Shown piece after piece: positions 2,501 through 5,272 of a DNA stretch of 5,278 bases (within the stretch, counting starts at the first letter, position 1; each line of letters starts with the position of its first letter). The position numbers and the translations under genes were made by a program. Source of the stretch: Histomonas meleagridis 2922-C6/04-290x (Eukaryota > Protista > Parabasalia); assembly GCA_020184695.1 (NCBI GenBank), contig JAANOX010000240.1, forward strand, positions 1 to 5,278, read 5' to 3'. The notes beneath the pieces are model-generated. The model was not told the origin of the DNA. It made no database searches and saw only the letters and a program-made list of their open reading frames with translations.

Positions 2501-2520
2501 TTTCATTGGTTACTTTACAT

Positions 2521-3987
2521 AAAAGTGACATTGAAATATAAACTTGAATCATAATTATCTAAATTGATTATATATTGATATTTTTCATCAAGTCTATCAA
2601 AATATTTTAAATCCTTATCAAATAAATCATCAATGATTTCTAATTGCAATTATATATTATCTGTTAAAATGAAAATATCGAAAATATTTTGTGAATAATT
2701 ATTTTTAAAGTCTGTAATTATAACGATAGGACATGATTTCGAATATGGATCTAAAGAGCATAAATAAATTACGAAAACAAAATTTTCAATTTGATTTTGA
2801 TTCTTTTTCATGAATAAATTATATTTTTTTTCATTTTTTATACATTTTCGAGCCGAACCTTTGGGAATCTGTTTAATGAATTTTAATCCTCTAACTTTTC
2901 CATCAATTGAAATGCCAACATATGACTTTAAAGAAATTGCATCAATAGAAATTACATATCTTGAATCATTATCATATCCAAATATTTTTATGATTTTTTT
3001 TAATTTTCCATATCATTATTAAATATTTCTGTTTAAAGATCATATTTTTCAAAATATTTATATCTATACCTTTTTACAGTTCGAAATGATGGTAAATTAA
3101 AAATTTGTTGTAGAATATTATACCAACTTTCTTCAACAGAACCGATAATTGTAAGTATTTCCTGAATTTGTGATGAATAATAATTTTTTTTTCTAATGTT
3201 GGCATTTAGAATTGAATTTTGGTAATGTGCATTTAGAAAACTATTATTTGTATTTTTTTCATATAAATTATCATATAATTTTTTCATCTTATTAGATTCA
3301 TTTTTCAATTTTTTAATTTCTTCTCGTAATCCCGATTTTTATAATTTCAATTGCTATATAGAATTTTTGAGCTTGAAATTTTCATTTTTGACAGTTCTTA
3401 ATTCTTCATAGATCTTACAGATTTTTCAATTTCTAATTTTTCGTTTTCTTTGTATGCACAATTCGAATTAATAATCAAAGACTAATATTTAATTGACCTG
3501 ATTATCTCCCGGAGGTCATTATTTTCTTGCTGTAGTGCATTATTATTCAATTAAATATTATAAATAGTTTCTTGCAACTTTTAAATATTTTGTTTTGATT
3601 CGATAATTATCTGATTTTTTTCGTTTATTTCATCAATTTTCCTTTTATAAATATTACCAATTTTGTTTTCCTTTTTCGGGCTGAAACTCATTTTAAGGAT
3701 GTACTCCAAATCCTCGACTTTCTGATGAGACGCATAGAAATTTTTTTTTGATTGACAGAAAAAGTTGAAACTTTTCTTCTTATTTTTGATCTTTGAGAAT
3801 CTCCGATAAAGCATATCCTATCCATTGATACTTTGGATTGTGTAATTGTAAGATTTCTACCATTTAAACCTGTCTGAACAGACAAGGTGACTGCATTAAT
3901 ACTTGAGGAATTCATTATTCTTTTTGTACTAAAATAAAATGTATCGAATAATATTTGAAATAATTCTTCCACAATTTTAGAATGATT
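2521..3987 (-). pseudogene. Central segment of the same transposase: coiled coil, LPSxRT helix and first two RNase H-fold acidic motifs; truncated before the C-terminal catalytic region
   Basis: Reconstruction with about 4 frameshifts (~3855, ~3655 or ~3745, ~3421, ~3001) reads NHSKIVEELFQILFDTFYFSTKRIMNSSSINAVTLSVQTGLNGR/QLHNPKYQWIGYALSEIL...RGFGVHP.../coiled coil (KIYEELRTVKNENFKLKNSI*QLKL*KSGLREEIKKLKNE)...SWYNILQQIFNLPSFRTVKRY.../IFGYDNDSRYVISIDAISLKSYVGISIDGKVRGLK...FVFVIYLCSLDPYSKSCPIVII...EIIDDLFDKDLKYFDRLDE. YxxLxxxFxLPSxRT followed by hydrophobic-D (VISID) matches the known layout of P/THAP9-type transposases. FDKD is taken to be a decayed FDGD-like second Asp. The family call is from motif recognition only. 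Confidence 0.75.
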
Positions 3988-3996
3988 ACTCAGAAT
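3988..3996 (+). repeat. Left copy of 9-bp target-site duplication ACTCAGAAT
   Basis: Identical to 4910-4918. The bases on either side differ between the copies, so the match is exactly 9 bp. Confidence 0.85.
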
Positions 3997-4007
3997 TGAA
4001 TTGTCCC

Positions 4008-4056
4008 GTACGGAAATTCTCAAAAATCATTCAATTTTTGAGTAAACCACTCAAAA
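4008..4056 (+). repeat. Outer left inverted-repeat module (A)
   Basis: GTACGGAAATTCTCAAAAATCATTCAATTTTTGAGTAAACCACTCAAAA, 44/49 identical to the reverse complement of 4855-4903. Confidence 0.9.
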
Positions 4057-4140
4057 AGTTGAACAGATTTTTATCCACGTTATGAAATAATAATATTGTA
4101 ATCTGTTTGGATAAATAATCATTCAAATCATTTTTTAGAT

Positions 4141-4203
4141 TTTTTGTACACCAGCTGTACGGAAATTCTCAAAAATCATTCAATTTCGGTGTAAACTATT
4201 CAA
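4141..4203 (+). repeat. Inner left inverted-repeat module (B)
   Basis: TTTTTGTACACCAGCTGTACGGAAATTCTCAAAAATCATTCAATT...AAACTATTCAA. 4141-4185 is 44/45 identical to the reverse complement of 4744-4788, and 57/63 over the full module. It shares the GTACGGAAATTCTCAAAAATCATTCAATTT core with A. Confidence 0.92.
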
Positions 4204-4223
4204 TCACATTCCAATCCATCCCT

Positions 4224-4286
4224 GCGTTTGTAATCGTATTTCACTGTAAAAGCCCGGCTTTTACAGTGAAATACGATTACAAACGC
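4224..4286. repeat. Perfect 63-bp palindrome (31-bp arms, 1-nt spacer)
   Basis: GCGTTTGTAATCGTATTTCACTGTAAAAGCC-C-GGCTTTTACAGTGAAATACGATTACAAACGC; all 31 pairs checked by hand. Confidence 0.97.
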
Positions 4287-4288
4287 TG

Positions 4289-4301
4289 GCGCCTTCGGCG
4301 C
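4289..4301. other. GC-rich mini-hairpin GCGCC-TTC-GGCGC (c-GAA-g loop on the minus strand)
   Basis: 5-bp all-GC stem 2 nt downstream of the long palindrome, standing out in an AT-rich background. Confidence 0.75.
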
Positions 4302-4725
4302 TCGCATGAAAAAATTTGTTGTAGAGTTGTATACTCGTTTTGTCTTGTATGAAACAAATGGATTAATGAACCCTTCAACTTTTTGTGTGTAATATATTGT
4401 TGTATTCTATTTTACACTTTTGTATAGAAGTTTCATGTATATTCCGATTGTTAACGGTTTTGGGGTGGTCCATAAGAATTTTCAGTATTTTTCACTTACA
4501 AAATAAATACCTCGTTACAAACTCTCTAGAGAGAACCCTGATTCATTATAAATTGTATTGTATTATATAAAATTATCATCTATAATAGATAAAAAATATT
4601 CTTCATTGTATTTATGAGATTCAGCGCTGAATTGCCAAATTAAATTTGATTTGCATTTGCTGCTTCAACAAAGGTCCTTCTTCAGCCTCTAACGGTCGCT
4701 AGTACGATAAAGTGAAAATTTTGGC

Positions 4726-4788
4726 TTGAATAGTTTTCTCATTAATTGGATGATTTTTGAGAATTTCCGTACAGCTGGTGTACAAAAA
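4726..4788 (-). repeat. Inner right inverted-repeat module (B')
   Basis: Inverted copy of 4141-4203. Confidence 0.92.
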
Positions 4789-4854
4789 TTCCCGATAATG
4801 CATCCGTCACTTTCCTATCGCTTTAACGACGATCGATTATATCTTATTTTTCAC

Positions 4855-4903
4855 TTTTGAGTGGTTCACTCGAAAATTGAATGATTTATGGAAATTTCCG
4901 TAC
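4855..4903 (-). repeat. Outer right inverted-repeat module (A')
   Basis: Reverse complement reads GTACGGAAATTTCCATAAATCATTCAATTTTCGAGTGAACCACTCAAAA, with 5 mismatches to A. Confidence 0.9.
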
Positions 4904-4909
4904 ACAACA

Positions 4910-4918
4910 ACTCAGAAT
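4910..4918 (+). repeat. Right copy of 9-bp target-site duplication ACTCAGAAT
   Basis: Identical to 3988-3996. Encodes ILS on the minus strand. Confidence 0.85.
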
Positions 4919-5272
4919 GAAATCAAAATTTTTCACATTAACGATAGGTTTTTCTACTATGAATCCTGATTCGATTGATAGTAAATAAGCAATTGTCCCC
5001 TCATCATATGGAAATAATGATTTATCATATTCATTGTTTGAAATTGTAATTCCAAATTATGTTTTTTTAATAACTTTTAAAGGTTGTAATTCTTTATCTG
5101 TTATGCTAACTATTATTTGATCAGTTGATATTTTTTTTGTAGTTTAAACGGATGTCAGCAGGTGACAGTCACCCTGTGAAGGAAGAGACGGCTACATATT
5201 TGCTTATTTTCGTTTTTTTTCGGCTTTCTTGTCATTTAAGATCGGATCATCGAATGATTTCCAATCCCTCAT
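4910..5272 (-). pseudogene. N-terminal segment (121 codons) of a decayed P-element/THAP9-like DDE transposase
   Basis: Manual translation from ATG 5272 gives MRDWKSFDDPILNDKKAEKKRK*ANM*PSLPSQGDCHLLTSV*TTKKISTDQIIVSITDKELQPLKVIKKT*FGITISNNEYDKSLFPYDEGTIAYLLSIESGFIVEKPIVNVKNFDFILS. This is one frame with 4 TAR stops (5204-06, 5192-94, 5144-46, 5057-59). It joins in frame to 3987 (NHSKIVEELF...) once 3997-4918 is removed. An in-frame TAA precedes the ATG (5273-75), so the true start could lie outside the window. Confidence 0.75.

Follow-up and report, generated by a model that had tools for sequence, protein, structure and literature searches.

The insertion and its host

The window, that is, the whole stretch of 5,278 nucleotides that was analysed, comes from the poultry parasite Histomonas meleagridis and is a patchwork of dead transposon pieces. 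A transposon with a target-site duplication is inserted at 4002-4909, within a dead gene fragment. The features are listed here in the order of their coordinates.

3772-3987, minus strand: host, downstream half of a dead 450-bp piece of a repeated gene (probably from the C-terminal region of a P-like transposase)
3988-4001, plus strand: target-site duplication, left copy, 14 bp (first nine bases perfect, last five, TGAAT, decayed; 12/14 matches, in register with the canonical termini)
4002-4909, minus strand (the orientation of the published consensus and the sense of the transposase): non-autonomous element of the IS481EU-5N1_HisMel type, 908 bp, TGTCCC...ACAACA, with relatives 83-93% identical and two 29-mers of the consensus exact
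4002-4056, plus strand: terminal inverted repeat of the TGTCCC end, holding end motif copy 1 (4008-4054)
4129-4203, plus strand: internal inverted-repeat arm, CCAGCT and then end motif copy 2 (4157-4203)
4221-4289, no strand: 34+1+34 palindrome, family-conserved with compensatory changes, with a small GC hairpin after it (about 4289-4301)
4571-4710, minus strand: what internal deletion has left of the transposase coding region, around the first catalytic D, recognised by DNA homology to an ORF-bearing copy
4726-4800, plus strand: internal inverted-repeat arm, end motif copy 3 (4726-4772, inverted) and then AGCTGG
4774-4909, plus strand: extra outer module of the TGTTGT end, not in the 860-bp published consensus, ending in a terminal inverted repeat (4855-4909) with end motif copy 4 (4857-4904)
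4910-4923, plus strand: target-site duplication, right copy, ACTCAGAATGAAAT, nearer than the left copy to the paralogous empty sites
4924-5138, minus strand: host, upstream half of the same 450-bp dead fragment

The 9-mer ACTCAGAAT has exactly two matches in the window, at 3988-3996 and 4910-4918, and two matches were seen in 0/200 shuffles. The stretch between the two copies starts with TG and ends with CA, and scripted excision of 3997-4918 leaves a single open frame on the minus strand, which reads ...PIVNVKNFDFILSNHSKIVEELFQILFDTF... across the junction. A genome search with both window flanks identified eight paralogues in the same genome (C69, C61, C244, C37, C138, C85, C111 and C255) that align uninterrupted to 3772-3996 and 4910-5138, the two flank matches overlapping by exactly nine bases. 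In the alignment each of them has a single equivalent of the 9-mer, this being ACTAATAAT, ACCCATAAT or ACTCATAAT. The intact 277-aa ORF of the C85 paralogue is continuous across the interruption point (...VEKPIVNVENFDIIISNHSKIVEEFFQILFDTF..., also given as ...NFDIIISNHSKIVEE...). The empty sites and the continuous paralogue ORF thus confirm both the insertion and its position. A reading made earlier from the sequence only had described the flanking 9-mers, the TG...CA ends and a frame restored by collapsing the two copies to one, and had suggested looking for uninterrupted host paralogues with a single 9-mer; the excision, the eight empty sites and the paralogue ORF bear this out.

The boundaries and the length of the duplication have to be revised. 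By its canonical terminus the element proper is 4002-4909, which is 908 bp, and not the 913 bp of 3997-4909 that had been proposed: TGTCCC starts at 4002, and ACAACA (which is TGTTGT in reverse) ends at 4909. Once the left end is placed at the canonical 4002, GTACGG is preceded by 6 nt on both sides, and therefore the asymmetry previously reported (11 versus 6 nt) disappears, five decayed bases of the duplication (3997-4001) having been counted as element. In this register 3988-4001 (ACTCAGAATTGAAT) and 4910-4923 (ACTCAGAATGAAAT) match at 12 of 14 positions, and the peak is sharp, with 12/14 at n=14 compared to 5/13 at n=13 and 2/15 at n=15. The extension from 9 to 14 bp is based on the canonical terminus of the family and its usual duplication length, since the five extra bases match at 3/5, which is not significant at 24% GC. 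The perfect 9-mer is the intact part of a 14-bp duplication, in which two changes have since occurred in the left copy. The 9-bp duplication of the sequence-only reading was therefore right as to a perfect 9-mer on both sides, but falls short of the true duplication, which is 14 bp with 12/14 matches in a family whose duplications measure 14-16 or about 24 bp.

The interrupted sequence is a 450-bp fragment running from 5138 to 3772 on the minus strand, and the gene is repeated at least eight times. It is probably a P-like transposase, as suggested by a 326-aa ORF upstream in the C85 paralogue, which gives collinear sub-threshold matches to the P-element HTH (PF12017, E 0.0059) and to the N-terminal part of a TNP-like RNase H (PF21787, E 0.015). 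P element / THAP9-like transposases have a P-type HTH domain and, after it, a TNP-like RNase H domain. The interrupted 277-aa paralogue ORF itself has no Pfam or PDB match, and the ESM Atlas result (≤0.83) was uninformative. In the window, the host ORF was searched as separate pieces, the joined protein coming from script translation only; a Pfam scan found no match for the two pieces flanking the insertion, its sole match being a weak P-type HTH farther on in the minus strand.

It is worth adding that a second decayed P-like N-terminal region lies on the minus strand at 2515-3308, where 3036-3308 matches PF12017 (E 0.029) and is followed by an ISIDAISL-type RNase H start. This region is unrelated at the DNA level to the interrupted fragment. 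Another repeat, at 3600-3771, matches C273, C179 and C126 with 85-93% identity and adjoins the end of the P-like fragment at 3772.

Family copies, transposase and published relatives

The genome searched was the attenuated-strain assembly of Histomonas meleagridis, consisting of 281 contigs and 43,133,364 bp (Table 1 of Palmieri et al., 2021, PMC8529796). A search with 3997-4909 identified about 20 related copies or fragments with 70-93% identity, and a 29-nt end motif gave 41 matches at ≤3 mismatches, compared to 0 for a control in which the pattern was reversed. In complete copies one terminus is TGTCCT and the other TGTTGT (reverse complement ...ACAACA), with GTACGGAAATTCTC... directly after each, and these terminal hexamers directly adjoin the duplications, except at C85, where AAT lies between. 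The matches within the duplications bounded by these termini are as follows.

C177: 15/15
C97: 15/15
C150: 14/15
C83: 14/14
C238:177.6k: 14/16
C21: 13/15
C85: about 16/25 (class about 24 bp)
Window copy: 12/14

The seven other independent insertions have duplications of 14-16 bp, with one of about 24 bp, and a 9-bp duplication in register with the termini was found in none of the family copies measured. The expectation that genome copies would share termini and have variable 9-bp duplications is borne out as to the termini of the complete copies, and not as to the duplications. The window copy is about 11-17% diverged from its relatives, so that two changes in the 28 bases of its duplication are to be expected, and with this divergence it is old. 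A palindromic target preference was not significant, with 23/62 symmetric pairs at the eight insertion sites against a null of 18.3 ± 3.7 (P = 0.13).

Copies of 1.3-1.5 kb with the same ends (C83, C21, C238:564.7k and C99) contain ORF pieces with the D...D...E motifs of an integrase core. The copy at C238:564.7k (1341 bp) has a 289-aa ORF with an above-threshold match to Pfam rve (E 1.5e-9). The best NCBIfam match of this ORF is IS481 transposase (E 1.9e-27, with IS3 at 1.7e-11), the score of 96.5 bits being below the curated cut-off of 224. Sequence searches of the PDB, with the IS481EU transposase and with the host paralogue ORFs, had no meaningful result. The copies at C21:103695-105035 (L024) and C238:564687-566027 (L025/L053), the two ORF-bearing ones of IS481EU-5, have homologous flanks, and therefore go back to a single insertion that was afterwards copied along with its surroundings, and not to two transpositions.

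The window element itself has no transposase ORF, and retains only a remnant of about 140 bp. The protein-level trace in the window element is weak (tblastn E 0.046), and the remnant is supported by homology at the DNA level: window positions 4571-4710 align to positions 455-590 of the ORF-bearing copy at C238:564.7k with 69% identity (blastn E 7e-12). Both ends and two internal segments of the window element are shared with the copies at C21 and C238:564.7k, and the homologous internal segments imply that it is an internally deleted, non-autonomous derivative. The suggestion that longer copies with the same ends would encode a transposase has thus proved correct, the copies being 1.3-1.5 kb and IS481-like. 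The related suggestion, of a non-autonomous element mobilised by a superfamily other than that of its host, agrees with the lack of an ORF and with an rve/IS481-like enzyme set against a probably P-like host, and fails only in naming Mutator-like or Merlin elements.

Elements of IS481EU, a superfamily found in parabasalids, have TGT...ACA (TNT..AYA) termini, and their duplications measure about 4, about 15 or about 25 bp (Kojima & Bao, 2023, Biology 12:365, PMC10045372). Five IS481EU families and the non-autonomous IS481EU-5N1_HisMel have been described in Histomonas meleagridis, where the families have 15-16-bp duplications and one 5N1 copy has a degenerate duplication of 24/25 bp (PMC10045372). 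In the same work, IS481EU-5_HisMel is 1391 bp long and encodes a transposase of 304 aa, its duplications being 13/15/16 bp; IS481EU-5N1_HisMel is 860 bp long and is listed with 3 copies and a duplication of 21 bp (Table S1, PMC10045372). Both deposited consensus sequences begin TGTTGTGTACGGAAATTCTCAAAAATCATTCAATT..., and that of 5N1 ends ...GAGAATTTCCGTACAGGACA (PMC10045372).

Four characteristics of IS481EU are seen here. An rve-type transposase closest to IS481 is present at C238:564.7k, with the window copy keeping a remnant only; TGT...ACA termini are found in the window (TGTCCC at 4002, ACAACA to 4909) and in the complete copies; the duplications fall into discrete classes (14 bp in the window and 14, 15, 15, 15, 15, 16 and about 24 bp elsewhere); and the host, Histomonas meleagridis, is a parabasalid. 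The family is therefore already known, having been published from the same species as IS481EU-5N1_HisMel / IS481EU-5_HisMel, and the element does not belong to an undescribed family as had been thought (PMC10045372).

Comparison with the 5N1 consensus was made by inspection of the text and by two 29-mers of the consensus, which are found exactly in the window at 4440-4468 and 4608-4636 on the minus strand. By eye, the order of elements in the consensus is the same as on the minus strand of the window: motif, transposase remnant, GC hairpin, palindrome, inner motif, CCAGCTGG palindrome, outer module and terminus. The window copy thus resembles IS481EU-5N1_HisMel in species, in its termini (TGTTGTGTACGG... 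and ...CCGTACAGGACA), in its end motif, and in an interior with a palindrome and a transposase remnant, and copies with the layout of the consensus (C85 and C238:177.6k) are 83-89% identical to it. However, it appears not to be collinear from end to end with the 860-bp consensus, having a second copy of the end motif, together with an outer module of 131 bp (about 4774-4903), at the TGTTGT end, and lacking about 80-105 bp near 4497-4513. Its duplication is 14 bp, compared to the 21 bp (24/25 degenerate) listed for IS481EU-5N1_HisMel (PMC10045372). With IS481EU-5_HisMel, the autonomous partner, it shares terminal sequences and motif, but it has no transposase ORF, only the remnant of about 140 bp at 69% DNA identity.

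Further afield, prokaryotic IS481 elements resemble this family in having an rve-type DDE enzyme (IS481 being the best NCBIfam match) and TG...CA ends, and some IS481 members have duplications of about 15 bp (PMC10045372, discussion). The family differs from them in its eukaryotic, parabasalid host and in a score that does not reach the curated IS481 cut-off; of the bacterial IS481 elements, most have 6-bp duplications (PMC10045372).

Taken together, we conclude, with a probability of about 0.93, that the element at 4002-4909 is an old copy of the IS481EU-5 lineage that has lost internal sequence and is non-autonomous, with IS481EU-5N1_HisMel as its nearest published relative, and that it inserted in a dead and probably P-like fragment. 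It is one more decayed copy of a catalogued parasite family, with no new superfamily or mechanism.

End motifs and palindrome

The end motif, of about 47 bp, is present in four copies in the window element, two at each end. In every family member examined, the ORF-bearing ones included, CCAGCT precedes the internal copies, and TGTCCT or TGTTGT precedes the terminal ones. The outer module (query 778-913 of 3997-4909) is matched elsewhere only in the 1515-bp copy at C83 and in fragments at C266, C278 and C258. In the 717-bp copies (C177, C97 and C150) and in the consensus-type copies (C85 and C238:177.6k), the terminal hexamers are joined to inner-type sequence. The shorter family members are best explained as having arisen by deletion between direct motif repeats.

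All copies of the IS481EU-5 type, with or without an ORF, have the 34+1+34 palindrome in the same position. Across nine copies, 13 of the 32 predicted pairs show compensatory changes, and broken pairs are almost absent from the long stem. Kojima & Bao (2023) mention no hairpin, palindrome or subterminal repeats for IS481EU (PMC10045372). Both the doubling of the end motif at each end and the palindrome maintained by compensatory changes thus go beyond the published description. Among the extracted family loci, the palindrome together with its GCGCC-TTCG-GCGC hairpin (window 4221-4301) is also found at L005:1561-1656, L015:1716-1815, L054:1908-2009 and L017:1508-1603. In the published IS481EU-4_HisMel consensus, a comparable pair of hairpins, unlike these in sequence, follows the ORF.

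Alternative readings and proposed mechanism

The perfect 9-mer on both sides, the TG...CA ends and the long inverted repeats are all compatible with the reading originally offered, of a non-autonomous Mutator-like or Merlin element with a true 9-bp duplication, in an undescribed family. Mutator-like elements make duplications of 8-11 bp and have a MuDR-type transposase in their autonomous members, while Merlin makes duplications of 8-9 bp and has an IS1016-like transposase. The likeness to the window element lies in the long inverted ends, the perfect 9-bp core of the duplication being coincidental here, whereas transposase type, duplications of 14-16 or about 24 bp and TGT...ACA termini all set the window family apart. 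Given that the seven other independent insertions include none with 9 bp, that the ORF-bearing copies with the same ends encode an rve-type, IS481-like DDE transposase, and that the family is published as IS481EU (PMC10045372), this reading is extremely improbable. A genuine 9-bp duplication could also be proposed within IS481EU, for which it would be off-class, with TGAAT (3997-4001) being filler or a carried-over piece of donor flank. It would explain why the 9-mer is perfect and the next five bases match at only 3/5, and the C85 copy also has AAT before TGTCC. However, the register peak at 14 is sharp (12/14, against 5/13 and 2/15), the duplication is directly at the TGT terminus in every other complete copy but C85, the divergence of about 11-17% leads one to expect the two changes, and the published length classes are about 4, 15 and 25 bp (PMC10045372), so that a 9-bp event is distinctly unlikely.

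The layout of the element suggests a further possibility, namely a nested pair, in which a 619-bp element (4155-4773) jumped into the centre of a miniature element of about 290 bp. In its favour, the inner unit is found alone at C177, C97 and C150 with 15-bp duplications of its own, the outer modules are joined without it at C278, and it lies in the middle of a perfect palindrome, TTTTTGTACACCAG|CTGGTGTACAAAAA. Yet in the window no direct repeat flanks the inner unit, whose borders are inverted rather than duplicated, and it is for this reason that deletion between motif repeats is preferred over nested insertion. In addition, every copy has CCAGCT before its internal motifs and TGTCCT/TGTTGT before its terminal ones, and the stand-alone 717-bp copies carry the terminal hexamers, which fits deletion between direct motif repeats and not use of the inner borders. 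The consensus of IS481EU-4_HisMel also has 2-3 motif copies per end (PMC10045372). We therefore consider nesting to be very unlikely, and return to a single, internally deleted IS481EU-5 copy.

For such a copy, a mechanism can be proposed by analogy with IS481/IS3-type DDE enzymes and retroviral integrases (PMC10045372, discussion). An IS481-like DDE (rve-fold) transposase would be supplied in trans by an ORF-bearing IS481EU-5 copy, and would bind the TGT...ACA inverted ends and the repeated end motifs of about 47 bp. The stagger of the cuts at which the element then joins target DNA would be about 14-16 bp, with gap repair giving rise to the duplication. At the window insertion this would have produced 14 bp, after which the two changes gained by the left copy would have left the perfect 9-mer.

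The doubled motifs and the covarying palindrome may possibly be required in cis for IS481EU-4/5 transposition, with the extra transposase sites helping to set the cut spacing of about 15 bp, and the window layout may be ancestral, the shorter forms being deleted from it. We put this forward tentatively, as more doubtful than not, and Kojima & Bao (2023) describe nothing of the kind (PMC10045372). If true, it would explain why copies that have no ORF keep the motifs and the palindrome. The doubled end motifs and compensated hairpin could guide experiments on the 15-bp and 25-bp duplications of IS481EU. A short direct repeat that is perfect can be what survives of a longer, decayed duplication, and superfamily calls that are made from duplication length should be checked against other copies.

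Finally, about ten fragments of approximately 100 bp match only the stretch from the inner motif to the centre of the palindrome, for example C191:7390-7493 (L026), C52:24493-24588 (L029), C52:128300-128402 (L030) and C37 (L028). Three of them run on into common unrelated sequence (GGGGCCATTATCCCCC...), and two have common upstream flanks. These fragments may belong to another repeat that captured this end of the element.
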